Shown here: piece by piece, positions 4,410 to 26,633 of the stretch
Position numbering within the stretch: position 1 is the stretch's first letter
Layout: every line of letters starts with the position of its first letter
IMG/VR virus record: IMGVR_UViG_3300026521_000003
Coordinates: 1-64,000 of that record
DNA: 64,000 nucleotides
Reading direction: 5' to 3' (one strand)
Notes under the pieces: model-generated
Told to the model about the DNA's origin: nothing
What the model saw: only the letters and a program-made list of their open reading frames with translations
Database searches by the model: none
Program-made: the position numbers and the translations under genes

Positions 4410-4448
4410 AATTTATAATTGTATAATTAGTATAAAATTGGGGGTTAT

Positions 4449-5252
4449 ATGAGCAAATTAGAAGAATTGATTAATGAATTAACAGATGACGAACTTGAAT
4501 ATTTACAAGAAACCGTATTTACTGATGATGGCACAATTATATCAAAAAAAGAGTTTGAGAAGATATTGCATTATGAAACAACTATGGAATCACAACAGGA
4601 TGCAGTACAATTTGCTCTTAAAATCAATCTTAATAGTGTATATGGTGTTCAAATTATGCCACATTTTAAATTTGCTGATGAATGGCAAGCATTAGGCGCT
4701 TCAACTACTTTAACAGGAAGAATTTTATCAAAATATGGCCTTATTGAAACCATAGAGCAATTTTTTAATCCTGAAAGAGAAAGTAGATTTGAATTCCCAT
4801 TACTTGATAATATTATTGTTGCTGCAGATGATGATGAGTTCTTTGAAAATCCAGAATCACAAAAATTAAGAAGTGCAGTAATTTCCGATACTGATAGTGT
4901 AACAAAAGATGCAACTATCGAAACGGATTTATTCGGTGTTATTACATTTGGTGAATTAGAGTTAAAAGCATCACATGTTAAAACTGAAAATAATAAAGAG
5001 TATTTTTATTTTGATTCTCCTTTACAAGTAACGAATTACATAGATAATAAAGTAGTATTCGATGAAGTTCAATATCTATATGCACATAGAGTTGAGAAAG
5101 AAATTTTTGAAATAGAATTAGAGGATGGTAGTTCAATCAAGGTGACTGAAGACCACTCTATAATGATTTTGGATAAAAATGGAGAACCAACTATTAAAAA
5201 GAAACCATCAGAATTATCAGTAGATGATGTATGTATGGTTTATACTAAATAA
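4449..5252 (+). CDS. polB: Family B DNA polymerase (gp43-like) internal fragment fused to split-intein N-half
   Basis: Motif B KINLNSVYG and TLTGR, then motif C cut at SDTD, followed by intein-like SVTKDATIET...IKVTEDHSIM (block B TxxH). Confidence 0.92.
   Translation: MSKLEELINELTDDELEYLQETVFTDDGTIISKKEFEKILHYETTMESQQDAVQFALKINLNSVYGVQIMPHFKFADEWQALGASTTLTGRILSKYGLIETIEQFFNPERESRFEFPLLDNIIVAADDDEFFENPESQKLRSAVISDTDSVTKDATIETDLFGVITFGELELKASHVKTENNKEYFYFDSPLQVTNYIDNKVVFDEVQYLYAHRVEKEIFEIELEDGSSIKVTEDHSIMILDKNGEPTIKKKPSELSVDDVCMVYTK
4896..5249 (+). other. Split intein N-fragment (118 aa, Ser1)
   Basis: Begins with Ser right after DTD. Block B TEDH present. The ORF ends with no block F/G. Confidence 0.9.
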
Positions 5253-5260
5253 GGTAAATT

Positions 5261-5977
5261 ATGTTTAAATGTATGTGTGGTAAAACGTATAAAACTGAAA
5301 AGGGACACCTAAAACATATATCATCTTGTAAATATAATAATATAGATTTAAAAAAAATTTATAGATTAGGATTGATTATACATGAAAATAATAAATTTTT
5401 ATTTCATGTACACTTTGGAAAAATTAATAAATTAAAAAAAGAAGGTAATTACACTAAAAGTGAGGCCGAAGAAATATTACTAAAAGAAAATATTTTTAAA
5501 TATCGAAAGTCGCTATGGGATATATTAGAAATATGGCAAGATGAATTATTGCCTAGTGAATATCGATCATTCACAGAATGGGCATTTAAAACATATAAAG
5601 ATATTACATTATTATCTTTAAAAAATACTCTTGGTAATAGAAAAGTAATTTATCGTTTTAATTTAGAAAATACAAACAAGATGATTAAAAAACGTATAGA
5701 TGATAGTTTACTATACATTCATAACAATAAGACATTTTATAACGATTTTGATTTTGTAGATGTTTTAATTACTGGAAATATTTCTATGTATTATGTATTA
5801 TTCAATGATTGGCTTGCATCAGAATGGTTTGGACGTTTAGAAATCGATTTACAGCATGAATTAGAATATTATGTGTCTATAGCTTCTAAAATTATTATTG
5901 ACCGTTTATCTCACGATGAATTTGATGAATTACAACAATTAGCAAATTCAGACACTCCAATAATTTATGAGATGTAA
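5261..5977 (+). CDS. Hypothetical protein with N-terminal zinc finger
   Basis: CMCGKTYKTEKGHLKHISSC. Confidence 0.6.
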   Translation: MFKCMCGKTYKTEKGHLKHISSCKYNNIDLKKIYRLGLIIHENNKFLFHVHFGKINKLKKEGNYTKSEAEEILLKENIFKYRKSLWDILEIWQDELLPSEYRSFTEWAFKTYKDITLLSLKNTLGNRKVIYRFNLENTNKMIKKRIDDSLLYIHNNKTFYNDFDFVDVLITGNISMYYVLFNDWLASEWFGRLEIDLQHELEYYVSIASKIIIDRLSHDEFDELQQLANSDTPIIYEM

Positions 5978-6410
5978 TATGAAATATCTATCTGGTGAAC
6001 CTATATATACATGGTTTTTTAATATGTCAGGTGAACTTAAATATCATAGAGTAATTATAGAAAATTATGAATATATGGATGGTATGCAATGGGAAGTAAT
6101 CGACACTTACAAATGCTACTATTTAAAACCTGAAAAATTTTTATATATATTTACGAAATATAAAAAAAATTATATAAAAGTACAGGGACATATGGTACAC
6201 AAAGATAAACTAACAGCTAAAATTATTTTCTTACAATCAATTTTAAAAAAATTTAAAATAAACACGTCCACAAGCAAGGAATTGAAAGTTATAATTGATT
6301 ATGCGAGTAAAACTCTTAGTCAATATATCGATAAATACCCTGAAAAGATTTTAGAAGCCTTACAAATATCTAAAATAAGTACTTCATCAGATTTTTCTAT
6401 TTGGAGATAA
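5967..6410 (+). CDS. Hypothetical protein
   Basis: ORF tightly packed in an operon. Confidence 0.55.
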   Translation: MRCNMKYLSGEPIYTWFFNMSGELKYHRVIIENYEYMDGMQWEVIDTYKCYYLKPEKFLYIFTKYKKNYIKVQGHMVHKDKLTAKIIFLQSILKKFKINTSTSKELKVIIDYASKTLSQYIDKYPEKILEALQISKISTSSDFSIWR

Positions 6411-6916
6411 CTATGGGTATGTATGATACTTTTGAAGTTAATAAGACATTAACATGTCCTCATTGTTCTAAAAAATTTCAATTAACACAAGGATTACAAA
6501 GTAAGAATTTTGAAAAAGTTTTAGAATACTATGAAATTGGTGATTTTATTGAATATGATGATAAAACATTTATCACTAATGAATATGATTGGTGTCCTTA
6601 TTGTAATAATATGGTTGATCTATATATTGGCGCACACAAAGGTATTTATATTGGTGTAGAACAGAACAAAGATATTATGAATGAAAAAATAGTTAATATA
6701 GATATACTAAAATTTTATAAAAAAACATTTAAAAAATATAAAGAAACAGATATAAAGTATCGCAAAATATATAATAGTATATCAAATACTATTGAACTTT
6801 TTAGTAAGTCAAATAAAAATAAATTTATGATCAGTCTTTTATTAAGTAGAGATGATGTATTTGATTATAGCATTATCACCACGTTAAAAAATATTATTAA
6901 TAAATTCAAAGGTTAA
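6401..6916 (+). CDS. Hypothetical zinc-ribbon protein
   Basis: MGMYD...CPHC...QSK...CPYC. Confidence 0.6.
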   Translation: MEITMGMYDTFEVNKTLTCPHCSKKFQLTQGLQSKNFEKVLEYYEIGDFIEYDDKTFITNEYDWCPYCNNMVDLYIGAHKGIYIGVEQNKDIMNEKIVNIDILKFYKKTFKKYKETDIKYRKIYNSISNTIELFSKSNKNKFMISLLLSRDDVFDYSIITTLKNIINKFKG

Positions 6917-6968
6917 TTTAAGTAAAATCTCTTTATAATTTATAAATTAAAAAAGAAGGATTTAAATA

Positions 6969-7523
6969 ATGATTGGAGCATTAAAAACATTAGGGACCGT
7001 TTTAACAATCGCATCAACTGCATCATTTGGGAAAGACCTTTATGATAAACATAAAGATAAAAAAAGAGCCAGACAAATTAACGAAGTTCATAATTTTATT
7101 AGTTCATTAGATTTAGAAGCATTACAAGATGCAATTGAAAGTAAAAATGAAGAGGCTCTTATTGATGCTGTTGAGGATATAATTATAGCTGCAGAAGCTG
7201 TAAAAAGTAAGTCAGAGTTAGAAGAATTAGCAGAAGATGCACAAGAATTAGCTACAAATATTATAGATAAAGTTTCAGTTGTAACATCAACGGTCATTGA
7301 TAAAGTTCAGAATAAAATTAAAGAGCATGAATTTAATGAAGATATCGAAAGACCTACATATAAGGAGTTTAAAAAATTAAAAAAACCCCTTATATTGTAT
7401 TCCAATGATGGTACAAAGTTTATTATAACGGTAGATATGGAGAACGTATTTACCAATAATAAAACTAAATCTGTAACATATATTGTTAGTCCAAAAGAAA
7501 GCATTATAGAAAAATTAGACTAA
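6969..7523 (+). CDS. Hypothetical protein
   Basis: AAGGA RBS; helical ORF. Confidence 0.6.
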   Translation: MIGALKTLGTVLTIASTASFGKDLYDKHKDKKRARQINEVHNFISSLDLEALQDAIESKNEEALIDAVEDIIIAAEAVKSKSELEELAEDAQELATNIIDKVSVVTSTVIDKVQNKIKEHEFNEDIERPTYKEFKKLKKPLILYSNDGTKFIITVDMENVFTNNKTKSVTYIVSPKESIIEKLD

Positions 7524-8662
7524 CGTTTAATTTTTCTACGCTTACTGATACCAATATTAGCTAATTTAGATTTTAAGGTTAAATTGGTATCACCTTTTAC
7601 TACCCCATTCATAATCATATCATATGTTTCTAACCACCCAAATTTTTCAAAACTCTCACCCACATCTTTTGCAGGCGAAGTAAATTTCGGATACGATACA
7701 ACCCATTCTGGTACGTTTGCTTTTAACACAGCTTTACCTAATTCTAACCCCTTCAAGTCTGTATCCCACTTAAAGTTTATTTTATCTTTATCCAAAACAA
7801 ACATAAGTTTCTTTTTTTGGAAGTTAAAAGATTTCAAAATTTCCATTTGTTCATAAGTTATGTTTTTGGATAGTACCGCCATACCATCAAAAATCCATGC
7901 ATCGACTAATGACTCGGTTATAAAAATTTGTTTAATATCTTCTGATTTAAATAATTTATCAAGCCCATAAATTATTCTTCCACGATCATTATAATCCTCG
8001 TCCGAAGGAGGATATAAATATTTAGTTTTTGTGGGAAAAAGTGCTCTCGCAGCAAACGAAATAAGTTTTCCGTTAAAATAAATTGGGAAAATTAATCTAT
8101 TACTATAATCCCCTTCCAAACAAATAAATAACTCTTTAGAGGCTGATATATCATCCAAACCATGGTTTTTAAGGTATTCTTTAGCTTTTTTTCTGTTTTC
8201 AATAAATCTTTTTCTATATTGCATTGATATTTTATCTTTTTTCATATTTAAGTTGATTGATACATCTGGCAATTCAATTTCTTTATATGTAATAAGTTCT
8301 ATTTTATCATCATCAACTTCATCTTTTAATTCTTCTTGATCTTTTAATTCCGCTTTTGGAAATAATTTCTCTTTTTTAATTTCAAGAAGAATAGCACCTA
8401 CTTTTTTCCATGCTGATTTTGATATGAAGTTAGCCAAGGTATTAATGTTTGAACCAGTAAATCTGTGTTTTCTCCCACAATTAAAACATTGAAATCCTAT
8501 TTCATCATGTTGAAATAAAAAGTGGCTTCTTGGATTTTTACTGCGACCATCATGACAATATGGACAACCTGTTAAGTTTTGTCGCCACCCCTTAGATGAT
8601 GTATTACCCATTCTAAAATATTGAGTTATAAATCCTTCTTGTTTAATTCCGTAATTTATCAC
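7520..8662 (-). CDS. DNA primase (T4 gp61-like)
   Basis: Zinc finger CPYC...FQCFNCG, RLIFPI, KY, TOPRIM ITESLVDA and LDKD. Confidence 0.88.
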   Translation of the reverse strand: MINYGIKQEGFITQYFRMGNTSSKGWRQNLTGCPYCHDGRSKNPRSHFLFQHDEIGFQCFNCGRKHRFTGSNINTLANFISKSAWKKVGAILLEIKKEKLFPKAELKDQEELKDEVDDDKIELITYKEIELPDVSINLNMKKDKISMQYRKRFIENRKKAKEYLKNHGLDDISASKELFICLEGDYSNRLIFPIYFNGKLISFAARALFPTKTKYLYPPSDEDYNDRGRIIYGLDKLFKSEDIKQIFITESLVDAWIFDGMAVLSKNITYEQMEILKSFNFQKKKLMFVLDKDKINFKWDTDLKGLELGKAVLKANVPEWVVSYPKFTSPAKDVGESFEKFGWLETYDMIMNGVVKGDTNLTLKSKLANIGISKRRKIKR

Positions 8663-8990
8663 TTAATTCCTTTAATATATCTGCTAATTTATTTTTTAAA
8701 TATTTCTTATATTTTACAATTTTAGTCATTTTCTCAAACTCACCTGAGATAATTTTTTTATCATTTATAGAAAATTTAATCTTTGATAAAGAATCTGTAT
8801 TTTCAAATGTCACAATAGATTTAATAAAGGACCAGGATACAATTACATAATTATATCCCTCTATTTCAAATGTGCCAAACCGATATAAACTTTTAGTATT
8901 TTTATTAATTTTTTTATGATTAAATTTGATACCTGATAAAATTAAAGCATCTATTAAAGTGCCAAGATATTCTTTATCTTTCTCTGTCAT
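8643..8990 (-). CDS. Hypothetical protein
   Basis: Overlapping ORF in an operon. Confidence 0.55.
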   Translation of the reverse strand: MTEKDKEYLGTLIDALILSGIKFNHKKINKNTKSLYRFGTFEIEGYNYVIVSWSFIKSIVTFENTDSLSKIKFSINDKKIISGEFEKMTKIVKYKKYLKNKLADILKELSDKLRN

Positions 8991-9313
8991 ATACTACCTT
9001 CTTTTATTTTAAGTAAATGTGAATTATTTCCCGAACCCATTATCATAAAAGCTATTTCAGGATATTCTTTATCAAAATTTGAAATCAGTCTATTTTTTGC
9101 TATTAAACTCAAAGGCGTTAGATCTAAAATTAAATGTTCTTCTTTAGTATATAACATATCAAATATATCATATTTTTTTAATACTGTGTCGGTCAATACA
9201 ATTAAAATATTATCATTAAAACGTTCTAAAAATTTAGCATTATCAATCATTATGTTTTTTATCTCATTAGATAAGGCATTAAGGGTTCGCCATTTAATTT
9301 CGATTATTAACAT
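8987..9313 (-). CDS. Hypothetical protein
   Basis: Overlapping ORF in an operon. Confidence 0.55.
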   Translation of the reverse strand: MLIIEIKWRTLNALSNEIKNIMIDNAKFLERFNDNILIVLTDTVLKKYDIFDMLYTKEEHLILDLTPLSLIAKNRLISNFDKEYPEIAFMIMGSGNNSHLLKIKEGSI

Positions 9314-9314
9314 T

Positions 9315-9773
9315 TTAATACATTATATTATGTTGAATTTTATGAAGATCTATAATCCCTTTGACTTTCCAGTCAAAAGCCGATAATTCTTTTTCTTTTG
9401 TCTGCATAGCATGAATAGTTTGCTCCATTTTACGCAATAATGATTTAGTAGCTTTATATTCTGATAGTTTTCTAATTTCTCGTTCATAGTCTTTAGTAGT
9501 TTTTAAGAGTTCGGGAAATCCATCATAATCTTCTGCTATACTATGAAATTGTCGTGAATGCCATGATTCAAATTCTGTCTCTAAATCAGCATACATCAGT
9601 CTAATCTTAAACATTATCTTTGTAAGTTTTGATTGGTGGAATGATGCAAGAGCTATAGACTCTTGCAATTTTTCAAGATCAATTTTTGGATCTAATGAAA
9701 AATTCATTATTTCAGTTAGATCATCAAATTCATAATCAGTCAGGACTTCTTGAAGAAATTCTAATTGTGACAT
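9315..9773 (-). CDS. uvsY: UvsY-like recombination mediator
   Basis: About 150-aa long-helix protein ending ...ELSAFDWKVKGIIDLHK, resembling the UvsY C-terminus; T4-like context. Confidence 0.5.
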   Translation of the reverse strand: MSQLEFLQEVLTDYEFDDLTEIMNFSLDPKIDLEKLQESIALASFHQSKLTKIMFKIRLMYADLETEFESWHSRQFHSIAEDYDGFPELLKTTKDYEREIRKLSEYKATKSLLRKMEQTIHAMQTKEKELSAFDWKVKGIIDLHKIQHNIMY

Positions 9774-9820
9774 ATACTTTTCCTTATTTTAAATATAAGG
9801 TAATTTTACATTTTTATTAA

Positions 9821-10156
9821 TTATTCTTCACTAAAATAAGTTACGTTTAAATCATCTAATTCAAAACCATAATTTGCAGCCGCTTGTTCTAAGTCCAATA
9901 CTGTATAATTTTCACCAGATTTTACTTTTCTTATTGCTGTTAAAGCGTTCTTATATAGAAAAGTATCAAATGCCTCAAACATAAATTGTTTATCAACTCC
10001 TGCTTTTTCTGCATATGATTCTATGACACTTATTGTAATATCCCCAGGTTTTATAGTTTTATTAATTTCTTTTACGACCTCTTGGAATTTTTTAGCTTGT
10101 TTTTGTAATGAAGCTGTTGTTGATTTAGTTGTATCTTTTTTCCTAAACATAAACAT
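9821..10156 (-). CDS. Hypothetical protein
   Basis: GAGGA RBS; open ORF. Confidence 0.55.
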   Translation of the reverse strand: MFMFRKKDTTKSTTASLQKQAKKFQEVVKEINKTIKPGDITISVIESYAEKAGVDKQFMFEAFDTFLYKNALTAIRKVKSGENYTVLDLEQAAANYGFELDDLNVTYFSEE

Positions 10157-10238
10157 ATGATTAATCCTCTCTTTAATATATTTCTTTTATTTATTCATTT
10201 TTTTGTAAAATATCTCTAAATAAAAATAAGGCTTAAAA

Positions 10239-11600
10239 ATGAAAATAATAAACAAAGAATTATTTGAAAAACCTAGTTGTAAATTTAAATTTCTAGCAAA
10301 AGAAGGCTTTAATATACCTAATTTTTATGAAGTTGAATCAACTGATGAAATTCTTGCTATATACAAAGAATACACAGAAGGTAAACGTGAGAACCTATCT
10401 TATGATATAGATGGTTTAGTTGAAGAAGTTAATGATTATGAAATTCAAGAAAAATTAGGATATGAACCAAACGGTTTAAACCCGAAATTTGCTACAGCTA
10501 TAAAATTTGATAGTATATCTAAAAGTACGGAATTAGTAGATATAAGATGGACTGTTGGTATGACTGGAAAAATTATCCCAACTGCTATTTTAAAACCTGT
10601 AGACATTATGGGAGTAACCATTACCAAAGCATCAATGCATAACTTTGATTATTTAATGGATTATATAAACAAATATGATATTGGTATTGGAAGTAAAATG
10701 ATAGTTGCAAGGAAAGGCGATGTTATACCACAAATAATAGGTGTTGCTGACAATAAAAAAATATCGGATATACAAATACCTGATTTATGCCCAATATGTC
10801 ATGAAAAAGTACATAATTTTTCAGTTGATTTAGTTTGTGAAAATCCATTTTGTGAAGCTAAGACTAAGGGAATCTTTACTAATTTCTTCGGAACATTAGA
10901 TATAAAAGGATTAAGTGAAAAATTTATAGATAAAGCTATTGAACAATTCAATATTAAAACTATCGATGATCTTATGAAACTTACGATTGATGATATAGAA
11001 TCTCTTGAAGGCTTTGCTAGAAAATCAGCAGAAAAAGCATACAACGCCATTCATAGTGTTAAAGAAGTGAGTCCAGAACAATTTATGGCATTATTAAATA
11101 TACCAAACCAAGGTGTTCGAGTATTTGAGAATTTATTATCTGAAACACCAATAGAAAAATTACTAGATCCAGATTTTAAAGCTGAAGATTTATTAGATAC
11201 TAAAGGAATTGCAGAAAAAACAGCTCAAGCTATATATGACGGCATTCAAATGAATTTAGAAAGAATACGTGAAAATGCTGAACATTTTACCATAATAACA
11301 AAGAAAAATAAAATTCAGCATTCAAGTAAAATTACAGGAAAGTCTTTCTGTATAACAGGTACTTTGAATAAAGGGAAAAGGAAAGATTATGAAAATTTAA
11401 TTAAATCTATGGGTGGATTAGTTTCTAGTGTTAATAAATCATTAAATTATTTAGTTACAAATGACCCTGAAACGACTTCTAGTAAAATGACTAAGGTATT
11501 AAAACTTAATGCAGAATGGCATAATAATGGTGAAGATAGATCAATACAAATAATCAATGAAGATGATTTAATAAATTTAATAGGAGATAGTAATGAGTAA
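10239..11600 (+). CDS. ligA: NAD-dependent DNA ligase, C-terminal fragment (end of adenylation domain, OB, Zn finger, HhH, BRCT)
   Basis: YDIDGLV, AIKF, VGMTGKIIP, ASMHN, GDVIPQI, CPIC...C...C, HhH motifs, BRCT FCITG. No KxDG motif I. Confidence 0.85.
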   Translation: MKIINKELFEKPSCKFKFLAKEGFNIPNFYEVESTDEILAIYKEYTEGKRENLSYDIDGLVEEVNDYEIQEKLGYEPNGLNPKFATAIKFDSISKSTELVDIRWTVGMTGKIIPTAILKPVDIMGVTITKASMHNFDYLMDYINKYDIGIGSKMIVARKGDVIPQIIGVADNKKISDIQIPDLCPICHEKVHNFSVDLVCENPFCEAKTKGIFTNFFGTLDIKGLSEKFIDKAIEQFNIKTIDDLMKLTIDDIESLEGFARKSAEKAYNAIHSVKEVSPEQFMALLNIPNQGVRVFENLLSETPIEKLLDPDFKAEDLLDTKGIAEKTAQAIYDGIQMNLERIRENAEHFTIITKKNKIQHSSKITGKSFCITGTLNKGKRKDYENLIKSMGGLVSSVNKSLNYLVTNDPETTSSKMTKVLKLNAEWHNNGEDRSIQIINEDDLINLIGDSNE

Positions 11601-12057
11601 AATGGAAGAAATAGAAGTAAATGAAGCACCAGAAGAAGGATTAACGGATTTACAGGTATATGGTATATCTGGAACTGTTGTACAGCTTTTAGGATTAGTT
11701 AAGAAATATTCAATACTTGCACAAATGCAAAAAGAAATAATGAATAAATTGCCGCAAACTCAACCGATAATGAGGGAGATTTATCAATTTGAAGAAACTA
11801 AACTAATAATGGATATTCGCACACAATTTGATATGGTTTATGTTTATACATTAGATAAAACGATTGTAAATAATTTTCAGGTATTAAGAGATGGATTTGA
11901 ATCAGCAATTTTATTTTTAACTACAAATTTACAAGATGTTACAAATTTTACAGACAAAAATTATATTGAGATCCTTGATGAATTTACAGATAAACTAACC
12001 ACCCTAGCCGATGCTATAGCTACAAAATCTATTTACGAATCAAATTTTAAAATTTAA
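11593..12057 (+). CDS. Hypothetical protein
   Basis: GGAG RBS; overlaps the ligase stop. Confidence 0.6.
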   Translation: MSKMEEIEVNEAPEEGLTDLQVYGISGTVVQLLGLVKKYSILAQMQKEIMNKLPQTQPIMREIYQFEETKLIMDIRTQFDMVYVYTLDKTIVNNFQVLRDGFESAILFLTTNLQDVTNFTDKNYIEILDEFTDKLTTLADAIATKSIYESNFKI

Positions 12058-12105
12058 AAATTATTTGTAAAATATCATTAATACAATTTATAAAAAAGGA
12101 AAATA

Positions 12106-13074: not shown

Positions 13075-13076
13075 TA

Positions 13077-13694
13077 ATGGTGTATATAAGTATAGATTTA
13101 GAAACAACTGGTTTGAATCCTGAAACATGTCAAATTTTAGAATTTGGAGCTGTCTTGGAAGACACTAATAATATCAAACCTTTAGATGAATTACCAACAT
13201 ATCATGCATATATCAAACATCCTGGCGGAAATATTTCTGGAAATATATATGCTTTAGATCTTAACAAGGAAATTATCAGTAACCTTAAAAATGAGAAAGA
13301 CTTAAAAGATAAATATAATTTTATAAAAGTTGAGGATTTAGCTGATGATTTTCTTGCATGGTGTAAAATTCAAGGATTGGAAATCAAAGAAAGTACGCAT
13401 AAAGGTGGAACAAATTTTTCATGCACAATTAATGTTGCAGGGAAAAATTTCTCCGGATTTGATCGTAAGTTTTTAGAAAATGTACCAGATTTTACTAAGA
13501 AAATACGTATGCGACAAAGAGTAATTGATCCAGCCATTTTATTTATTGATTGGGAAAATGATACTTCAGCCCCACATTTAGAATTATGCAAACAAAGGGC
13601 AAATATATCTGGAGTTGTTACACATTTAGCAGTCGATGATGCAATGGATGTAATTAAATTATTACGAACTCAATATGCTAATAAACCAAAGTAA
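13077..13694 (+). CDS. DEDDh 3'-5' exonuclease (DnaQ-like)
   Basis: IDLETTG, GKNFSGFD, HLAVDDA. Confidence 0.85.
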   Translation: MVYISIDLETTGLNPETCQILEFGAVLEDTNNIKPLDELPTYHAYIKHPGGNISGNIYALDLNKEIISNLKNEKDLKDKYNFIKVEDLADDFLAWCKIQGLEIKESTHKGGTNFSCTINVAGKNFSGFDRKFLENVPDFTKKIRMRQRVIDPAILFIDWENDTSAPHLELCKQRANISGVVTHLAVDDAMDVIKLLRTQYANKPK

Positions 13695-14689: not shown

Positions 14690-14691
14690 TT

Positions 14692-16668: not shown

Positions 16669-16751
16669 ATATGCTCTCCGTTTTTATATCATTTTTATAT
16701 ATTTATTCGATTTTTTGTAAAATATTATTAATTCAATTAAAGAGGAACTAT

Positions 16752-17480: not shown

Positions 17481-17490
17481 AGGTTGAGAT

Positions 17491-17916: not shown

Positions 17917-17965
17917 TTGTATAATTATATATGAAAACAAATTAAAAACAAAAAGGATTTAAAAA

Positions 17966-18262: not shown

Positions 18263-18284
18263 AATTTAAATTAAGGTTTATTTT

Positions 18285-19112
18285 ATGAAAAATATCAAAC
18301 AGAATCAATCTCATAATGAATATGAGATTGAAATCCCTTTACCAATAACAAAGCCTAAAAATATATCTGTCTTTGACGATCAACAAAGAAATATAGCAGT
18401 TTTACGCATATATGGCGAAATCGATGAACCTTCAGAATATATTGAGGAGCTTTCAAAATTAAATAATTTATCACATCAATATGATGTTATTGAAATTACC
18501 CTTAATTCACCGGGTGGAAGTCTTAATACTGCTGTTGACTTAGCTTCAATAATCAATAACTTTCAACATGTTGTAACTATTGGTAAAGGTGAAGTAGCTT
18601 CTGCAGCATTTATGATTTGGACTATGGGAGATATTAAGGTTGTTACTGATTACTCCATGTATATGGCTCATAGAGAATCATATGGTATGTATGGAAAAAC
18701 TTCAGAACATAAAGCTGCTGCTAATGTTTTTGGTGAAGTATATGAAGAATTATTTGAAGATTGCTTTGGTAATATTTTAACTGAAGAAGAAAAACAAATT
18801 GCAGAAAGAAGCGAAGCATGGATTTCTTATAAAGATTTATTATCTCGCCCAGGTGTAATTTCGTATGATAGTTATATTGAACCAGCTAATCCATATTCTA
18901 TTATGGATACTTATATTTCAAATGATGGTAAAATGTTTATGTTTGATAATGAAATCGGAGCATTTAGGACTATCAAAATTAAATATGGTAATGAGATTAT
19001 TACAGATATGACCGATTACCTTTATGGAATTACGACAATTACAAAATTGCCAAAAATCAAAAATAAACCTTCTAAAAATGTAAAATTAAAGAAAAAGAAG
19101 GATAACAAATGA
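18285..19112 (+). CDS. ClpP-like serine protease (divergent)
   Basis: LNSPGGS, VASAA, YMAH. Confidence 0.75.
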   Translation: MKNIKQNQSHNEYEIEIPLPITKPKNISVFDDQQRNIAVLRIYGEIDEPSEYIEELSKLNNLSHQYDVIEITLNSPGGSLNTAVDLASIINNFQHVVTIGKGEVASAAFMIWTMGDIKVVTDYSMYMAHRESYGMYGKTSEHKAAANVFGEVYEELFEDCFGNILTEEEKQIAERSEAWISYKDLLSRPGVISYDSYIEPANPYSIMDTYISNDGKMFMFDNEIGAFRTIKIKYGNEIITDMTDYLYGITTITKLPKIKNKPSKNVKLKKKKDNK

Positions 19113-19999
19113 TACAAAATCAACCAGTAAAAGTAGATGTTGAAGAAGCACAAGATTTAGCAAATATTAAAACATCGAAAACAAAAATATGTTTAGACGA
19201 TATAGACAATTTTATTAAAGATGAAATCAGAGATAGTTTTTATATGAAATTTTCCAATGGGGATTTTGAAAAATCTTGGACAGAATATAAAACAATTCCT
19301 GTATTTTTAGCAAAAGGGAATATCTATGATTTAGTACCAGAAGGTATTTCTAAAGAGACGCATTATGTATTACGTTTAGTTGCAACATGGCATGTTGAAA
19401 AAGCATTAAACGCTTTAAAATTTGATACTGATAATGACGATAATCTCAAGATAGATAATTCCATGGGTAATATCGGCACTGCTGGACGTATAGCAAAAAT
19501 ATGGGCTGGAAATACTTTAGATTCTGAAAATATTAGAGAATATGGTGATGGAAGATTTACAAAAATGCCTAGACTTGCAGCATTTCCAGCATCTGAAAAA
19601 GATAGAAAACGTCCTGTTACGGTCAATATTGAAAATGCTGGGATTGGAAGTGTCTGTTCACATCATTTCTTACCATTTAGTATAACTAATGATAGTAATA
19701 GTAGAATTGTAATTTCATATATTCCTAAAGATAAACTATTAGGTTTGAGTAAAATTGGAAGATTCGTAGAATGGTGTTTAAATAGACCATCTTTACAAGA
19801 AGAGGTAACTGCACTAATTCACGAAAAAATTTCTAAAATTGCAGAAACTGAAGATGTATATGTTGGGCTTTTTAATATTGTTCATTCCTGTGAAACAACT
19901 CGTGGCGCAAAACAATATTCCACTACTACAACTGAAGATTATAGTGGTGTATTTGATGATCCAATTATGAGAAATACTATTTTAGATGGAATCAAATAA
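19109..19999 (+). CDS. folE: GTP cyclohydrolase I
   Basis: SVCSHHFLPF, LGLSKIGR, LQEEVT, HSCETTRG. Confidence 0.9.
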   Translation: MIQNQPVKVDVEEAQDLANIKTSKTKICLDDIDNFIKDEIRDSFYMKFSNGDFEKSWTEYKTIPVFLAKGNIYDLVPEGISKETHYVLRLVATWHVEKALNALKFDTDNDDNLKIDNSMGNIGTAGRIAKIWAGNTLDSENIREYGDGRFTKMPRLAAFPASEKDRKRPVTVNIENAGIGSVCSHHFLPFSITNDSNSRIVISYIPKDKLLGLSKIGRFVEWCLNRPSLQEEVTALIHEKISKIAETEDVYVGLFNIVHSCETTRGAKQYSTTTTEDYSGVFDDPIMRNTILDGIK

Positions 20000-20453
20000 A
20001 ATACAGATCGGAGGTTATGATACACATAACCTCAGCGATAATTCAGTTTTTTTTGCATCAAAACAAAAAAAATCAAAAATATCCTTCATTATTCACAACA
20101 TTGTAATTATAAATGATTCAGAAATATTTAAAATTTTATTAAAAAATAAGTTTATTATTCGTATAATGAAGTTTAAAGATGAAGAAACACAACAACCGTC
20201 ACTTGTTATAGACTTTGTTGATACAATATCAAATCAAATTAAGTTTAAACCTGATAAAATATTTTATAATGGTGTTGGTGTTGGTGGATTCTTATTTGAA
20301 TTAAATTATATTTCACAATGGGAAATACCTATTGTTGATAAATTACTGAGATCTTTTGTTATAGGTTCAAAAGAAGATTTTTTGGAAGTTATTAACACTT
20401 ATAATTTATTTTTAAATAGTGAGACACAGTTATTCATCGAAACCCATTTTTAA
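19986..20453 (+). CDS. Hypothetical protein
   Basis: Overlapping ORF in an operon. Confidence 0.55.
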   Translation: MESNKIQIGGYDTHNLSDNSVFFASKQKKSKISFIIHNIVIINDSEIFKILLKNKFIIRIMKFKDEETQQPSLVIDFVDTISNQIKFKPDKIFYNGVGVGGFLFELNYISQWEIPIVDKLLRSFVIGSKEDFLEVINTYNLFLNSETQLFIETHF

Positions 20454-21180
20454 AAGGTTTAAATTGAGATATTCACCATATTCATTTTCCAAAATTAACA
20501 CGTACAAGCATTGCCAAAAAAAATTTGAATGGACTTATGTAAATAAAAAAAACATTGATAAAAATTATAGCGATCCCGCATACTTTCAACGGGGTCGATT
20601 TATACACCAATATATCGCAAAACGATTATTAGGCCAAAATATAGAAATAAATGGTTATGCATCAATAGAAATAGATGATAAATTAAATTTGATAAACCAA
20701 GCAGATGAAGCGCTAGAAAACGACTATATAAATATAACATTCGACTTTGATATTACGGAAGTAGAGCAACCTATCAAATTAGATAAATCTTGTAAAATTT
20801 CTAAATCAAAAAAAGATAGTATGTTTACTGGTTTTATAGATTATTATGCAGTACATGATAATCTAGGTGTAATTGTTGACTGGAAAAGTGGAAAATTCAA
20901 AGACCGACCAAGTTTTGAACAATTGCAATTATACTCTATATGGTTAATAGAAAAATATCCACAAATAGATGAAATTGATTTACTTTTTTATTATATCGAA
21001 CATAATAAATTTAATATCATTACAATAGATAAACAGTCAATTATTAAATTTCGAGATAATCTATTATCCGATATTTCCACAATAGAAAAAACTGATACTT
21101 TTTCTATCAATCCATCTAAACAATGTGTATATTGTCCTTTTTTTGAATCTTGTTTAGATGAATTTAATATTTTAATTTAG
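20419..21180 (+). CDS. PD-(D/E)XK exonuclease, Cas4/RecB-like with 1+3 Cys cluster
   Basis: SFSKINTYKHC, G..IH, GFID, VDWKSG, QLQLY, CVYCPFFESC. Confidence 0.85.
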   Translation: MRHSYSSKPIFKRFKLRYSPYSFSKINTYKHCQKKFEWTYVNKKNIDKNYSDPAYFQRGRFIHQYIAKRLLGQNIEINGYASIEIDDKLNLINQADEALENDYINITFDFDITEVEQPIKLDKSCKISKSKKDSMFTGFIDYYAVHDNLGVIVDWKSGKFKDRPSFEQLQLYSIWLIEKYPQIDEIDLLFYYIEHNKFNIITIDKQSIIKFRDNLLSDISTIEKTDTFSINPSKQCVYCPFFESCLDEFNILI

Positions 21181-21519
21181 GACATCTTGTTCTTGAATTA
21201 GACTAGATAATGCATTTTTAAGTATATCTTCATATTTACTTTTTGATGCAGGGCCTGCTAAATTACCATAGACCTTACCTTTTTTCATAAATAATACCGC
21301 CGGTAATGTATTCATTTGGAAATATGAAGCTACTTTATGTTGTTCTAATATACGACATAGATAAATATCTACTTTCCCTTTTAAACGACCATCAAATTCT
21401 TTAAATATTTCTAAAATCTGATTCTTAGTAGGTATATCATCCGAATAAAATAGTATGTACTGTGCTTTATCTTCTAATAAAACCCTATCAATATTTTCAT
21501 CTGTTAAATTTTTTATCAA
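21172..21519 (-). CDS. Thioredoxin-fold protein lacking CxxC
   Basis: LTDEN...ILFYS-DDIPT...LPAVLFMKKGKV...G; cis-Pro motif kept, catalytic cysteines absent. Confidence 0.65.
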   Translation of the reverse strand: MIKNLTDENIDRVLLEDKAQYILFYSDDIPTKNQILEIFKEFDGRLKGKVDIYLCRILEQHKVASYFQMNTLPAVLFMKKGKVYGNLAGPASKSKYEDILKNALSSLIQEQDVLN

Positions 21520-21594
21520 TTCTATCTCCTTTGTTATATTAGATTAATTTTACATTTTTTTGTAAAATATTAAAAAAGAAAATAAGGAATATAT

Positions 21595-24123
21595 ATGAAT
21601 AACCTTTCTAAAAAGGCAATCGAATATTTAAAGCAATTAAATGACTTAGACATTGCATGGTTTGAAGATAAAGATAGAAAATTTGTTATGCTATTTGAAA
21701 AGCCCTCACAAGTAAAAGCTATAAAGCCCGTTATGGGATCTACAAAAGATACAAAACATATTAAAAATATTTCGCTTGCTGGTCATACTATGAGACTAAA
21801 AAATTTTGATGAATATAATCCTAAGCTAAAGGATAAATCATGGTATAAAATGGTTAAAGATAAAGATCTACCATTTATACCTGATAACTATGAGTTAGTT
21901 GTTAAAGAAAAATCAACAGGCAAATTTAAAACTGATTATCAGGAAATGGTTTTAAATGCTAAGCGAGCATTTGATGAAGCTGATTGGATTGTACTAGGTG
22001 TTGATCCTGATAATGAAGGTTGTGCATTAGGTATGGAAGTTATTATGGAATGTAATGCTGAAGATAAAGTAATCGGCATGGTTAATATGTCCAAACTTGA
22101 TTTTCATTCATTAAAAGAGGAAGTAAAAACTTTAGACAAAATACCTTTTTGGAATATGGCACAAAGTGGTTTTGCTAGAGGAGAATTTGACTGGGCTTTT
22201 GGCTTAAATAATACTATTTTAGCGTCTGTTTTATTGGGTGGTGGTCAAACATATCATGTTGGTGGTGTGAAATCACCTGTTATAAGAATGGTAGTAGATA
22301 GACTAAATCATATTAAGAATTTTAAACCTGTTAAATATTGGAGATTCGGGGGTTTAGCAAAACATAAAGAATCTGGTGTGGAATTTAATTATATTATAAA
22401 AATTAAACAAGATGATACAGATATTATCAAAACTCAAAAAAATATAGATAAACTTGAAAAGGAATTAGAGTCTATCGATAAAGATGATGAAGTTAATAAA
22501 GATAAAGTTTCATCATTATATAATGAATTAGGCAAATTAAGATGGAAATTAAATGAATTAGTTAAAGAATTTGAGAGTTCAGAAAGAGATATTTATTCAA
22601 GTAAAATGAGAAAAAAAGTAGAAAATGCCATAAAAATAGGTATGAATTTTAAAGTAAGTAATTTCACACAAAAAAATAATCTTACCCAAAATCCACCATT
22701 AGCATATTCACTAACTGACTTACAATCAGAGGCAGGTAATTTACATAATTTTACACCTGCAAAAACATTAGCTACGGCGCAAAAGTTGTATGAAGGACAA
22801 TGGCAATCTTATCCTAGAACAGATAATAGATATTATGCTAGTGGCGAAATGTCAAATATTAAAAAGATAATACCAAATTTATTAAATCTATCATCATTTA
22901 AAAATGTTAATATTCCTACTCCATTTAAAGTAAAAACTGGAGTATTTAATAGTGCAAAAGTATCAGCTCATACAGGTTTAGCACCTACAGCAAAAGAAAT
23001 GACTGACAAATCATTATCCGGAGAACAAAAAATTATTTTTGATATGGTTGCAACAAGATACCTTATTCAATTTATGGATAAATTTGAATACTATAAAGTT
23101 GAAATGGATGCCGATATTGATGATGAAATATATTTGACTACTTTTCAAAATATTCAAACTAAAAAAGGTTGGAGAGAGTTATATAATCCAGCTAATATGT
23201 ACGGTTTTACTTACGTAGAACAACAAACCTTACCAACAATGAAAAAAGGTGATAATATTGAAATCATTACGATAGAAAAAGAATCATTAGAAACTAAACC
23301 CAAACCTATGTTTAGTGAATTTAGCTTATTAAAAGGAATGGAAAATATTTCACGTATATATCCAGAATTAGAAGGATTAGAAAAAGGCATTGGTACTCCT
23401 GCTACAAGAGCAAGTATTTTAGATTCTTTATTTAAATCAAAATACTTAATCAAAAAAGGTAGAGTTATTGATGCTAGTGAAAAGGCAATAACACTTACAA
23501 ATTTATTACCTGATGAAATGACTAATCCTAAATTAAGAGCCGATATGGAAGCAAAACTTAATCAAATTGTTGATGGTAGTTTGACAAAAAAAGAATATGA
23601 ATTAGAATTTAAGAAAATGGTAGAAGAACAGGCTAAAAAATTATATGAGATAGGTGAAAAAAATAATATTGAAATAATTGATAAAGCTACTTTACCACCT
23701 AGTGAAGCACAATTAAAATTTGCAAAAACTATGGAGAAAGAATTAAATATAAAAATCCCTAAAGAAGCCTTAGAACTTAAAGATGAATTAACCAAATGGC
23801 TTAAAAAACATGAGAAAAAAATGCCTAATTTACTTTCTGATAAACAAGTAGCATTTTTAACTGAATATGGTCAAGACGATGAAGAAATCGTAGCGATTTT
23901 AGATGCAAATGCTAAAAGAGAAATGACAAAAGAACAAAAATTTAAAGCCTCTAAATGGTTAGGAACTTATATGCGAACTAGTGAATATCAGAAAAAGAGA
24001 GCTGCAAAAGCGGCAGCAACAAGAAAACGTAATAGAGAAGCTAAAATGAAAGCTATGGGTATTGAAACACCAACAGTTTCTATAAAACGTCCACGTAAAA
24101 AGAAAGAGAAAAAAGAAAAATAA
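21595..24123 (+). CDS. Type IA DNA topoisomerase (TopA/TopB-like)
   Basis: EKPS, GH, DPDNEG, SYPRTD (catalytic Tyr), AHTGLAPT, GIGTPATRA. Confidence 0.92.
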   Translation: MNNLSKKAIEYLKQLNDLDIAWFEDKDRKFVMLFEKPSQVKAIKPVMGSTKDTKHIKNISLAGHTMRLKNFDEYNPKLKDKSWYKMVKDKDLPFIPDNYELVVKEKSTGKFKTDYQEMVLNAKRAFDEADWIVLGVDPDNEGCALGMEVIMECNAEDKVIGMVNMSKLDFHSLKEEVKTLDKIPFWNMAQSGFARGEFDWAFGLNNTILASVLLGGGQTYHVGGVKSPVIRMVVDRLNHIKNFKPVKYWRFGGLAKHKESGVEFNYIIKIKQDDTDIIKTQKNIDKLEKELESIDKDDEVNKDKVSSLYNELGKLRWKLNELVKEFESSERDIYSSKMRKKVENAIKIGMNFKVSNFTQKNNLTQNPPLAYSLTDLQSEAGNLHNFTPAKTLATAQKLYEGQWQSYPRTDNRYYASGEMSNIKKIIPNLLNLSSFKNVNIPTPFKVKTGVFNSAKVSAHTGLAPTAKEMTDKSLSGEQKIIFDMVATRYLIQFMDKFEYYKVEMDADIDDEIYLTTFQNIQTKKGWRELYNPANMYGFTYVEQQTLPTMKKGDNIEIITIEKESLETKPKPMFSEFSLLKGMENISRIYPELEGLEKGIGTPATRASILDSLFKSKYLIKKGRVIDASEKAITLTNLLPDEMTNPKLRADMEAKLNQIVDGSLTKKEYELEFKKMVEEQAKKLYEIGEKNNIEIIDKATLPPSEAQLKFAKTMEKELNIKIPKEALELKDELTKWLKKHEKKMPNLLSDKQVAFLTEYGQDDEEIVAILDANAKREMTKEQKFKASKWLGTYMRTSEYQKKRAAKAAATRKRNREAKMKAMGIETPTVSIKRPRKKKEKKEK

Positions 24124-24134
24124 ATAATTTTTTC

Positions 24135-24142
24135 TATAAATA
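24135..24142 (+). promoter_or_regulatory. T4-type late promoter motif TATAAATA
   Basis: Exact match 21 bp upstream of the 24163 ORF. Confidence 0.55.
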
Positions 24143-24162
24143 AATCAAAAAGGATGATATGA

Positions 24163-24468
24163 ATGACATTACTTGAATTAAATGAATCACTTTCTCTAAA
24201 CTTTGAAAATGGAATTATTGTATATTTAGATAAATCGAATAAAACATTTAGATTTGTAGATTCAAGCGATAGTGCTCGCCGAGGATTAACAACAACTATA
24301 AAAAATAAAAATGATTATAAAAAATTAACACGACAATATAAGATTGATAGTAGTTTTGATGAATTTATACCTTTAAGTAATGATTTTAAGAAAAATAATA
24401 AGTCATCTGAAATGAGGAAAGTTTTAGCTGCTATGCAAAATGACATCCTCAATCTAAATAGAAGGTAG
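24163..24468 (+). CDS. Hypothetical protein
   Basis: AGGA RBS and late motif upstream. Confidence 0.55.
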   Translation: MTLLELNESLSLNFENGIIVYLDKSNKTFRFVDSSDSARRGLTTTIKNKNDYKKLTRQYKIDSSFDEFIPLSNDFKKNNKSSEMRKVLAAMQNDILNLNRR

Positions 24469-24474
24469 TTAATA

Positions 24475-25428
24475 ATGGGTTATGGGTATTATTCTCGACG
24501 TTATTCATACGAAAGTCCTTCTCCCATAGAAATGTCAGATAATGACATAAATACATTAATCAATACTCTCAAAGAACAAATAGAAAATAATAAATTAAAA
24601 GATATAAGATCAACATTATCCAAATTGAAATTATCCACAAATGAAAAATATAAAGATTATGTTGGATTTAATGCTGTAATTTTAGCATACGTATATGCAT
24701 TAAAAATAGGCAGTAGTAAAACAATAAGTAGTTTGGAAAAAACTATTTTTAAAAAAAATTTTACAGTTGACGGGTTAAATATTTTATCACTTTCTAAGAT
24801 TCTAAAAAATGATTTTAAACTATTTATGGATCATTATCTAATAGATAAAAATACAATATACACAATAGATGATAATGAAACTATTACCTTTTTATTCTCA
24901 AATTATCCTACTGAAGCAGAAGTAATTATTAAAAATGGTAAAATTAGTAAATTTATAAAGGGCGAGGATAGATTAAATGTAATACTATCAATAATTAAGT
25001 ATTCTGAATTATTTGAGACTATTATAATCGGTTTAACAACTTTATATGGTACCGATTATGTAGATAAATTTTCAATCAAATATGACACTTTAAAAAAAAT
25101 CCACGATGAAATAATCTTAAAATCAAAACCTCTATTAAAGTCTCTCTTAAATGATTTTTATTATATTATTTATAAAGAATTTATAACTGCAGATATTTTA
25201 ATTTATGATTTAGAACATAAGTTGTTATTAGAAAATACACAAAAAAAATATATTGAATCTATATTAGATATAAGCGAAAAAAAACTTTTTGAATTATTAT
25301 ATCTGATTAAAAATCATGAATTACGTACTAATTTTATAGCTAATTCTGAAAAAGTATTATCATTAATTGTTAAAAATGGAGATCCCACACTTATACCTAA
25401 TGAAATAAAGGACATATTTCTTTTTTAA
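24475..25428 (+). CDS. Hypothetical protein
   Basis: 317-aa open ORF. Confidence 0.6.
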   Translation: MGYGYYSRRYSYESPSPIEMSDNDINTLINTLKEQIENNKLKDIRSTLSKLKLSTNEKYKDYVGFNAVILAYVYALKIGSSKTISSLEKTIFKKNFTVDGLNILSLSKILKNDFKLFMDHYLIDKNTIYTIDDNETITFLFSNYPTEAEVIIKNGKISKFIKGEDRLNVILSIIKYSELFETIIIGLTTLYGTDYVDKFSIKYDTLKKIHDEIILKSKPLLKSLLNDFYYIIYKEFITADILIYDLEHKLLLENTQKKYIESILDISEKKLFELLYLIKNHELRTNFIANSEKVLSLIVKNGDPTLIPNEIKDIFLF

Positions 25429-25478
25429 AAAAATTGTAAAATATTATACAAATAACATAGTATAATAAGGTATTTACA

Positions 25479-25601
25479 ATGACACTATCTCACAAAAAAA
25501 TAAAATCTATTAAAAAAGTTAAATATTATGACAAAGTATATGATATAACTATGAAGTCCAACCCACATACATTTTTTGCTAATAATATTTTAGTACATAA
25601 C
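25479..25601 (+). other. Split intein C-fragment (41 aa, basic), Ser+1 at 25602
   Basis: Block F VYDI and block G LVHN followed by Ser. Confidence 0.92.
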
Positions 25602-26633
25602 AGTTGCTATTTTAGAATAATGGAGGCAGAAAATTTGGAGGAAGCTCAAAAAATTGGTGCCGATGTTGTAAAAGCATGTGATGAAGGTAGTATTCCAATG
25701 TTGGTTAAAGATATTTTTAATGGTGATGATGTCATGAGATCCGATTTTGAAGCTATTGCCCGTTCAACATTATCATATGGTAAAAAGAAACAATATGCAT
25801 TTCTAAAAGGTTGGGAAGATGGTGAAGTACTTCCAAAGCCAAAATTAGGTATTACCGGTCTATCTATTAAAAGATCTGATTCACCCAAACAACTATCTAT
25901 GGAAATGAAACCGTTCTTTACTGAAATTATGAAAGGTTTAAAACATGAGCAAATCAAAGAAGCTATGGATAAAATTGAGTCGGATTATGATGATCTAAGC
26001 TTATATGATTTATCTGCAAAACGTTCAGCGAATAATTTAGGTAAATATTTAAAAGCATTCAATTATGAAATTGAATATAAATCTAGACCTTATAATATAG
26101 AAAAAATTGATGAATTTTTAAAAGAAGAGTACCCTGATATAAAAATTAAAATAAATGATAAAATATATTTTGATTTTATGAGAGAAGGTAGAGGTCGTTA
26201 TTCATTAGAAGATGGTGAATTAATAAAAGATGTTAATGGCGAAATTTATATTGAAGCAAAGGTAAAAATGGTTGTACCATTTCATATAAAGGCGTCTATT
26301 TTATATAACTATCTATTAGATGAATATAATTTATCATCCGAGTTTAATCAAATATTAAACGGTGAAAAAATTAAACTTTTTTATATTAAACCTACAAAAA
26401 TAAATATAAAATATACAAATAGTGATGGTGAAGTATTTGATATGATACAAGAATTTGATTGTATTGCATTCCCTTCTAGTTCTAAACACATACCATCATT
26501 TATTAATGATTTTACCCCAGATAAAAAGAGAATGCTAGAAACTTATTTCTTTGGTAAAATGGAAACTATTTTTGATGTTATTGGATTTAGCAAAGAAAAA
26601 CTTGAAAATATAGCTATGGATTCACTATTCTAA
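25479..26633 (+). CDS. polB: Split-intein C-half fused to family B DNA polymerase C-terminal part (palm/thumb)
   Basis: VYDITM...TFFANNILVHN|SCYF, then KKKQYA, GLSIKRSDSP, PFHIKASILYN, GEKIK. Confidence 0.92.
   Translation: MTLSHKKIKSIKKVKYYDKVYDITMKSNPHTFFANNILVHNSCYFRIMEAENLEEAQKIGADVVKACDEGSIPMLVKDIFNGDDVMRSDFEAIARSTLSYGKKKQYAFLKGWEDGEVLPKPKLGITGLSIKRSDSPKQLSMEMKPFFTEIMKGLKHEQIKEAMDKIESDYDDLSLYDLSAKRSANNLGKYLKAFNYEIEYKSRPYNIEKIDEFLKEEYPDIKIKINDKIYFDFMREGRGRYSLEDGELIKDVNGEIYIEAKVKMVVPFHIKASILYNYLLDEYNLSSEFNQILNGEKIKLFYIKPTKINIKYTNSDGEVFDMIQEFDCIAFPSSSKHIPSFINDFTPDKKRMLETYFFGKMETIFDVIGFSKEKLENIAMDSLF

Follow-up and report, generated by a model that had tools for sequence, protein, structure and literature searches.

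Inteins which interrupt a family B DNA polymerase (PolB) inside motif C, between DTD and the following serine, have been described in several forms. Aes123 PolB1 from T4-like Aeromonas salmonicida phages, from which the CL/CLm variants were engineered, trans-splices in vitro (PMC11923092), and PolB16 OarG has the same insertion site, SGDTD|S (PMC10189870). A split PolB intein of the Pseudomonas jumbo phages PA5oct and MIJ3 was published in 2019, and Salicola phage SCTP-2 has a contiguous mini-intein at this site (PMC6892783). In the fractured genes of Dassa et al. 2009 the two halves share a locus and are separated by a free-standing homing-endonuclease gene, and uncoupling of the halves was proposed as the last step, after endonuclease loss (PMC2677866). 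Cyanobacterial DnaE and Nanoarchaeum PolB are known cases of unlinked halves (PMC2677866). Here we describe two open reading frames (ORFs) in the viral record IMGVR_UViG_3300026521_000003 which carry an N-terminal (IntN) and a C-terminal (IntC) intein part next to PolB sequence and lie 20 kb apart. The DNA analyzed, referred to below as the window, is the first 64 kb of the corresponding JGI metagenome contig 3300026521|Ga0256828_1000001 (289,880 bp); together with contig positions 64-74 kb, which were also searched, about a quarter of the contig was covered. We put the probability at roughly 85% that both ORFs are halves of a functional, naturally split class 1 intein, divided at the typical endonuclease-insertion position and located at motif C (DTD|S) of a T4/RB69-like PolB.

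Results

Two polymerase ORFs with complementary intein parts

The two ORFs (Table 1) were found to be exactly as an earlier sequence-only reading of this DNA had drawn them, with the first running through ...SDTD into an acidic IntN of 118 amino acids (aa) starting with serine, and the second opening with a Lys-rich, HN-ending IntC of 41 aa followed by SCYF. The N-extein contains motif B, KINLNSVYG (K58...N62-S63.Y65-G66), and the first part of motif C, S146-D-T-D149, and K58, N62, S63, Y65, G66 and S146-D149 are invariant in the family alignment. Pfam DNA_pol_B matched this piece of PolB weakly and under the cut-off (E 5.5e-4), and its tblastn matches were to the PolB of PA5oct, PTm1 and SCTP-2. 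The C-extein was matched by phmmer to residues 704-791 of RB69 gp43.

Directly after DTD, IntN begins at Ser150 with block A (SVTKDATI), followed by an NX-type histidine, His213, and by block B, VTEDHSIM (T233-E-D-H236). IntC contains block F, VYDITM..NPHTFFAN, and block G, ILVH40-N41, with S42 at the +1 position. An intein profile search, which the sequence-only reading had proposed as a check, matched both ORFs with Pfam Intein_splicing (N half, positions 37-94/155, E 2.4e-6; C half, positions 119-155/155, E 1.7e-5) as well as with the family hidden Markov models (HMMs). Block B of IntN was aligned by phmmer with block B of Npu DnaE. In the AlphaFold2 model of the N half, IntN is all-beta with a predicted local distance difference test (pLDDT) score of 76-91, and the top 32 matches of this IntN model in a Foldseek search of the PDB were all inteins, nearly all with a probability of 1.00, including Aes123 PolB1 (9hth_B), the Npu DnaE N-fragment and the NeqN/NeqC complex. 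The thumb was modelled with pLDDT > 90 in the C half.

The N half had homologues in 74 metagenomic clusters and the C half in 64, mostly with 53-84% identity, and the lengths of the halves were conserved (N, 265-268 aa; C, 381-384 aa). Conservation was counted over 51 aligned full-length N halves and 49 aligned C halves. Ser1, H213, K217, T233, D235 and H236 were invariant in 51/51 N halves, with His213 aligning with R-H of PA5oct and PTm1, while D22, T31, F32 and N41 of IntC were present in 49/49, H40 in 48/49 and H30 in 44/49. On the extein side of the junctions, S146-D149 (51/51) and S42, C43, Y44 and F45 (49/49) were invariant. The intein parts diverged more than the exteins, at 54% identity for IntN vs a mean of 77% for its extein, and 68% for IntC vs 75%, and such divergence around conserved catalytic residues indicates selection on the chemistry, beyond binding. 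The single cysteine that had been pointed out near the C-terminus of IntN is C262, the sole Cys of IntN, and there is none in IntC. This residue is kept in 42/51 homologues, with Val at position 262 as a natural variant in the family, 8/51 IntN have no Cys at all, and a Cys is also the +2 extein residue; the intein is not strictly cysteine-less.

IntN has a net charge of -11 and an isoelectric point (pI) of 4.6 (family mean charge -14) and IntC a net charge of +6 and pI 9.9 (family mean +5). DnaE split inteins, whose halves are brought together by electrostatic capture, are known to have this polarity of acidic IntN and basic IntC. When HMMs of the intein parts were run against the six-frame translation of the window, only these two ORFs were matched (E 1.6e-52 and 3e-25; next best E > 0.2), so that the window contains exactly one IntN and one IntC of this PolB intein family and no better-matching partner for either.

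An intein-less relative, P0125 (488 aa, 49-54% identical), reads ...ISDTDSCYFR... without interruption and starts where the N-extein starts. Since P0125 reads through the junction, the predicted spliced product (149 + 343 = 492 aa) matches a real contiguous protein. The joined exteins read SDTDSCYF, which is the motif C that the sequence-only reading expected, and the tryptic peptide across the spliced junction is predicted to be SAVISDTDSCYFR. An alternative junction, with an intein running from V151 to S42 and Cys at +1, would give the same spliced sequence but was rejected, as it has neither a nucleophile at position 1 nor a terminal Asn.

Four PolB C-terminal fragments on other metagenome contigs (P0132, P0133, P0137 and P0138) carry most of an intein at the same site, with an NX R/K-H and blocks B, F and G (...NILVHN|S/T). 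Either their inteins are split atypically, as in PolB16 OarG, or the gene calls are truncated.

Separation of the halves

From the N-half stop to the C-half start the distance is 20,226 bp, with 19 ORFs of 90 aa or more on the plus strand and 8 on the minus strand (27 in total), in line with the estimate of more than 20 genes in both orientations made from the letters. The locus therefore does not have the fractured-gene layout, in which only an endonuclease gene separates the halves. The same order and strand of the two halves was found in three further long contigs. Compared with a distance of 20.2 kb in the window, the halves are 20.2 kb apart in IMGVR_UViG_3300026484_000295 (identity of N/C half, 93%/98%), 28.2 kb apart in Ga0611983_000027 (71%/83%) and 27.2 kb apart in IMGVR_UViG_3300035665_000004 (63%/74%). 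Gene order downstream of the N half and upstream of the C half is conserved between the window and IMGVR_UViG_3300035665_000004, the most distant of the four. The N-half locus with the same flanking genes was also present in several independent assemblies (JGI, ENA and two Logan assemblies), and the sequencing runs which hold it are labelled hydrothermal vent, epibiont and biofilm metagenomes. No recombination-type repeats, either direct or inverted, were found to bracket the segment at 5252 and 25479. The common layout in four genomes, the collinear genes and the lack of bracketing repeats indicate that the uncoupling predates the divergence of the clade and that the separation is neither a misassembly nor a recent insertion.

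Of the genes which flank the halves, 5261-5977, 24163-24468 and 24475-25428 gave no PHROG match, and 5261-5977 and 24475-25428 gave no significant Pfam match. A SegE-type GIY-YIG homing-endonuclease-like gene is located in the window downstream of the C half (Table 1). In relative L014 a similar gene (1867-2910, minus strand) directly precedes the PolB C half in the opposite orientation, and in relatives L009 (5230-7728) and L014 (4256-6748) a hybrid kinase with PAS, HisKA, HATPase and response-regulator domains is found 3' of the C half.

A common promoter-like motif

Both halves come with a start codon, a ribosome-binding site and a promoter-like motif of their own, the latter an extended -10 element (Table 1). 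The core TTGTAWAAT occurs 22 times in the window vs 9.6 +/- 3.1 copies expected, a count reached in 0 of 100 shuffles, and 13 copies are followed by an ATG at a distance of 8-40 nucleotides (nt), which in 12 cases is 16-40 nt. Besides both PolB halves, the ligase fragment, clamp loader, bacterial-type topoisomerase, 5'-3' exonuclease and topoisomerase II fragment are preceded by the motif. In relatives it is retained ahead of the N half (L017, L007 and L020) and ahead of the C half (L019, L009 and L014). A common motif class upstream of both halves suggests that they are transcribed separately but in a coordinated manner. A metatranscriptome contig that is 100% identical covers 4790-5166, across the junction of extein and IntN. 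The motif also surfaced among the top direct-repeat families. Another candidate, the 10-mer TAGTATAAWA at an identical offset upstream of both halves, was dismissed because it is not enriched (2 found, 2.4 expected), and a generic scan for sigma-70 promoters and terminators in the window performed no better than on shuffles.

A polymerase in at least three pieces

The sequence-only reading had PolB split in two. The split at DTD|S stands, but the N-half gene encodes only the middle of the polymerase (positions 144-249 of the 453-position Pfam model), and PolB is accordingly predicted to be encoded in at least three genes. We refer to the missing exonuclease/motif A part as piece 1 and to the N- and C-exteins as pieces 2 and 3. 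Neither tblastn, profile HMMs nor a regular expression for motif A (D..SLYPS) detected piece 1 in the window or in contig positions 64-74 kb, and tblastn with PTm1 ORF-236 and the PA5oct N-terminus did not find it within 10 kb of either half in relatives. A profile search of a protein database returned many PTm1-like stand-alone pieces, none of them on the contigs of the window, and a scan of IMG/VR gave, among the matches listed, matches in other clades only. Piece 1 is presumably encoded elsewhere in the 290-kb genome. The same three-gene partition in PTm1 and the start of P0125 at the start of piece 2 suggest that the break between pieces 1 and 2 is the older one and is intein-free. It resembles the gp43A/gp43B arrangement of some T4-like phages. 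This break is mentioned by Dassa et al. (PMC2677866).

Comparison with described split inteins

That a split intein was already known at this PolB site, as stated in the sequence-only reading, was borne out by Aes123 PolB1, which shares both host protein and site (native exteins IDTD|S...N|SVY vs SDTD|S...N|SCY here). The two have in common the oxyester chemistry with Ser1, terminal Asn and Ser+1 and the typical split position, and the fragments are 120/39 aa in Aes123 vs 118/41 aa here. Our IntN model superposes on the Aes123 structure (PDB 9hth_B, E 3.8e-4, 121 aligned columns), although identity in the structural alignment is only ~24%, Aes123 is absent from the tblastn matches and the IntN of the window retains one Cys.

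The closest annotated sequence relatives are the split intein of PA5oct/MIJ3 PolB (N half, 32% identity, E 4e-17), the nearest published one, and the SCTP-2 mini-intein, with the same site, Ser1/Ser+1 and nearly identical splicing blocks (B, ...VTEDHSIM..; G, ..NILVHN|S). The N half of PA5oct is a single 803-aa gene that includes the exonuclease domain and motif A, whereas PolB of the window is distributed over at least three genes. Its C half is found 1.7 kb downstream, past a gene annotated as a Hef-like/HNH homing endonuclease, whereas the halves in the window are 20 kb apart with no endonuclease between them. In distant IMG/VR relatives (L022-L036) an N half including the exonuclease domain likewise ends 1-1.5 kb upstream of the C half. 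Tenacibaculum phages PTm1 and PTm5 ('intein-containing split DNA polymerase precursor') show the same three-gene partition (ORF-236, ORF-239 and ORF-241), with a piece 1 of ~497 aa, a piece 2 of 263 aa with IntN at its end and a piece 3 with IntC at its start. They differ in that all three pieces lie within 6.3 kb, with an annotated VSR endonuclease gene between pieces 2 and 3, and identity is ~25%.

Outside phages, Neq Pol of Nanoarchaeum equitans is likewise a family B polymerase with a naturally split cysteine-less intein and halves at separate loci, but it is archaeal and thermophilic, with shorter intein fragments (~98/30 aa) and a polymerase in two pieces rather than three. The cyanobacterial DnaE inteins (Ssp, Npu) are also encoded as unlinked halves, combine an acidic IntN with a basic IntC and are split at the typical site, and they are matched by the IntN of the window in block B (phmmer) and in fold (Foldseek). 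They differ in their family C polymerase host, their Cys1/Cys+1 thioester chemistry and their location in a cellular genome. We found no phage with unlinked split-intein halves in a literature search, which was itself of incomplete coverage.

A second IntC in a topoisomerase II gene

A topoisomerase II fragment in the window also begins with an IntC-like part (Table 1). The sequence after it, SAIASF...GMPLKGKVLNV, corresponds to the TOPRIM EGD|SA site of a T4-like large subunit, and the junction aligns exactly to the topoisomerase II large subunit of Atu_ph07, ...LGEGD|SAIAG...GLPLRGKVLNV. The Pfam intein match of this part was weak (E 0.03, positions 120-155/155); it is acidic (net -9) and scored E 7.3 with the PolB family HMM. 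By sequence, a second, orthogonal split intein, of which the C half is seen, is thus predicted in the same genome, and because this IntC is unrelated and acidic it should not cross-react with the acidic PolB IntN. Its N-terminal partner (ATPase and IntN) was not found in the window or in contig positions 64-74 kb.

The TOPRIM domain of this fragment has an insertion of ~150 aa (product residues ~99-245) between ...KGKVLNV... and ...IYIATDADPDG, without a counterpart in Atu_ph07. Directly downstream of the fragment there is a homing-endonuclease-like gene with matches to Pfam DUF7487 (E 2.9e-29) and a PHROG homing-endonuclease family (E 3.5e-24) and, weakly, to the PA5oct Hef-like endonuclease. 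Its product contains tandem ...KEKYGVDSIAKLDSTKEKIKKT... repeats.

Other features of the window

The gene content of the window fits an AT-rich jumbo phage with a T4-like replication gene set. Replication-type genes include the clamp loader, the NAD-ligase fragment, a topoisomerase with Topoisom_bac and Toprim domains, topoisomerase II and a 5'-3' exonuclease, and further genes encode ClpP, DnaJ, a flagellin-like protein and, by appearance only, tail-fibre-like proteins. A close cultured relative was not found, with a 7.9 kb nucleotide search against 50,697 phage records giving one chance-level match of 67 nt. The flagellin-like protein appears complete (Flagellin_N, E 1.4e-35; Flagellin_C, E 3.3e-15), as does DnaJ. 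The ligase ORF is without the N-terminal part of the adenylation domain, the part which carries the catalytic lysine, and the same 453-aa form was found in relatives (62% identity). Like PolB, the NAD-dependent ligase may be encoded in pieces; the start of this ORF shows no intein motif. For the two very large ORFs of 2376 and 1094 aa, family searches gave just DUF4828 (E 1.5e-4) and a PHROG of unknown function.

Table 1. Location of the polymerase and intein parts, promoter-like motifs and other features of the window (+, plus strand; -, minus strand)
Feature	Position	Strand	Description
N-half ORF	4449-5252	+	267 aa; PolB residues 1-149, IntN residues 150-267
PolB piece 2 (N-extein)	4449-4895	+	149 aa; fingers and palm, motif B to motif C
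IntN	4896-5249	+	118 aa; Ser1 codon AGT at 4896; stop codon 5250-5252
C-half ORF	25479-26633	+	384 aa; IntC residues 1-41, then S42-C-Y-F and thumb domain
IntC	25479-25601	+	41 aa, 10 Lys; ends ...LVHN; Asn codon 25599-25601
PolB piece 3 (C-extein)	25602-26630	+	343 aa; motif C completion, KKKQYA region, thumb; stop 26631-26633
Extended -10 motif TTGTATAAT	4419-4427	+	21 nt upstream of N-half start codon
Extended -10 motif TTGTAAAAT	25434-25442	+	36 nt upstream of C-half start codon
(T-rich)TTGTAWAAT(AT) copies	4419, 10203, 12065, 16715, 17917, 21560, 25434, 43032	+	others also present
(T-rich)TTGTAWAAT(AT) copies	35551, 60508	-	others also present
Intervening segment	5253-25433	both	ORF lists, Pfam
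Zinc-finger protein, possible primase	intervening segment		inferred from sequence, no Pfam match
Clamp loader, dUTPase-like, ClpP-like, GTP cyclohydrolase I, Cas4-like nuclease	intervening segment		Pfam
Bacterial-type DNA topoisomerase	intervening segment		Pfam Topoisom_bac and Toprim
Tail-fibre-like proteins	intervening segment		by appearance only
NAD-dependent DNA ligase fragment	10239-11600	+	453 aa; starts at adenylation-domain profile position 177/253
RNase T/DnaQ-like 3'-5' exonuclease, stand-alone	13077-13694	+	Pfam RNase_T, E 1e-7; among replication genes
DnaJ	27158-28159	-	Pfam
Flagellin-like gene	28322-29125	+	Pfam
SegE-type GIY-YIG homing-endonuclease-like gene	32704-33321	+	
Very large ORF	45461-52591	-	2376 aa
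Very large ORF	54129-57413	-	1094 aa
Homing-endonuclease-like gene	57516-59237	-	directly downstream of topoisomerase II fragment
Topoisomerase II fragment with IntC	59244-60476	-	IntC-like part 60330-60476, 49 aa, ends ...LLTHN

Discussion

The two PolB ORFs encode a bona fide split intein of known type at a known site, which is very probably active. Transcription and translation of the two halves would be separate, with a promoter-like site of one common class in front of each, and the acidic IntN and basic IntC would associate electrostatically to form one HINT domain. Ser150 (Ser1) would perform the N-O acyl shift, attack by Ser42 of the C half (Ser+1) would give a branched oxyester, cyclization of Asn41 would free the intein and an O-N shift would leave a 492-aa polypeptide with the ...SDTDSCYF... 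active site restored. This product would then join non-covalently with a third polypeptide providing the exonuclease domain and motif A. Co-expression, association and splicing of the halves are all steps that we infer. The locus appears to have reached the final stage of the pathway of Dassa et al. 2009, in which endonuclease loss is followed by genomic uncoupling.

Several observations weigh against a working pair. In this clade the residue before the NX histidine is Ala, Ser or Glu, whereas the Ser1-specific NX histidine of other Ser1 inteins is preceded by Arg or Lys (PMC10189870). Both Pfam Intein_splicing scores are under the gathering threshold, and IntC alone was modelled with low confidence, although a poorly modelled isolated IntC beside a well-modelled thumb is the behavior expected of an unpaired IntC. 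The metatranscriptome contig may stem from contaminating DNA. With 64 kb + 10 kb of the 290-kb genome covered, further halves of the PolB intein family may be encoded elsewhere.

The missing basic residue would also fit intein halves that only dimerize, with the PolB fragments held together non-covalently by a module that no longer splices. PolB of this clade already tolerates one non-covalent, intein-free break, that between pieces 1 and 2, and many natural split inteins splice poorly in vitro (PMC11923092). However, the residues required for chemistry only (Ser1, Thr and His of block B, the His-Asn pair that ends IntC, and Ser+1) show little or no variation across ~50 diverged homologues, and the break falls within DTD|S, the metal-binding motif, at which backbone continuity should be important, so we consider loss of splicing unlikely. 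It is less probable still that the two ORFs are not partners and that either intein part has its counterpart elsewhere in the genome. The partial coverage of the contig leaves room for this and the window does hold a second IntC, but that one is unrelated and its negative charge should repel the PolB IntN, the exteins are adjacent parts of one protein as judged by the intein-less homologue, and both halves co-occur in all four long contigs examined.

The separation itself could be a misassembly, or infection could involve excision or inversion of the 20-kb segment, creating an uninterrupted gene whose mini-intein splices in cis. We regard this as highly improbable, since four genomes from different samples and studies have the same order, strand and 20-28 kb spacing, several independent assemblies hold the N-half locus, the genes in between belong to the conserved core, 5252 and 25479 are not bracketed by direct or inverted repeats, and a start codon, ribosome-binding site and promoter-like motif are present for each half separately. 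Just as improbable in our view are decaying remnants in a phage replicated by another polymerase. Piece 1 was indeed not found in the sequence covered, but the ORFs are intact and of conserved length, extein identity is 75-77% and all PolB motif residues are invariant across ~50 clusters.

Taking the ORFs as halves of a functional split intein, the claim that their separation and Ser1/Ser+1 chemistry make it a useful new intein needs to be narrowed. The intein is new as a family member and its halves are unlinked, but its chemistry has been characterized before (Aes123/CL, PolB16 OarG and Neq Pol). What is notable is the occurrence of unlinked halves across a clade of vent jumbo phages, together with a three-piece PolB and a predicted second orthogonal split intein. 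Serine-type split inteins are rare and are sought for protein ligation under oxidizing conditions; the only naturally split cysteine-less inteins named in the literature consulted are Aes123/CL, PolB16 OarG and the thermophilic Neq Pol, the one other example being the artificially split Psp-GBD Pol. The family described here contributes ~50 natural variants to this PolB site. With unlinked halves, it is trans-splicing itself that must be under selection, as is the case for the cyanobacterial DnaE inteins, which are very fast.

More tentatively, trans-splicing may be a standing feature of the replication machinery in this clade, with at least two essential enzymes, PolB and topoisomerase II, encoded as unlinked, orthogonal halves of opposite polarity under one promoter class. 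If true, PolB assembly would need both a covalent trans-splice and a non-covalent subunit, the locus would be the first in a virus to represent gene fracturing at its fully uncoupled end-state, and the ~50 diverged Ser1/Ser+1 variants would be a large natural library shaped by obligate trans-splicing. Apart from this, a single PolB site now shows the whole proposed pathway, from intein-less genes through a contiguous mini-intein (SCTP-2) and fractured genes with an endonuclease (PA5oct, PTm1) to the uncoupled halves of the window clade, and the clade indicates that a phage can keep an essential polymerase in three separately encoded pieces.

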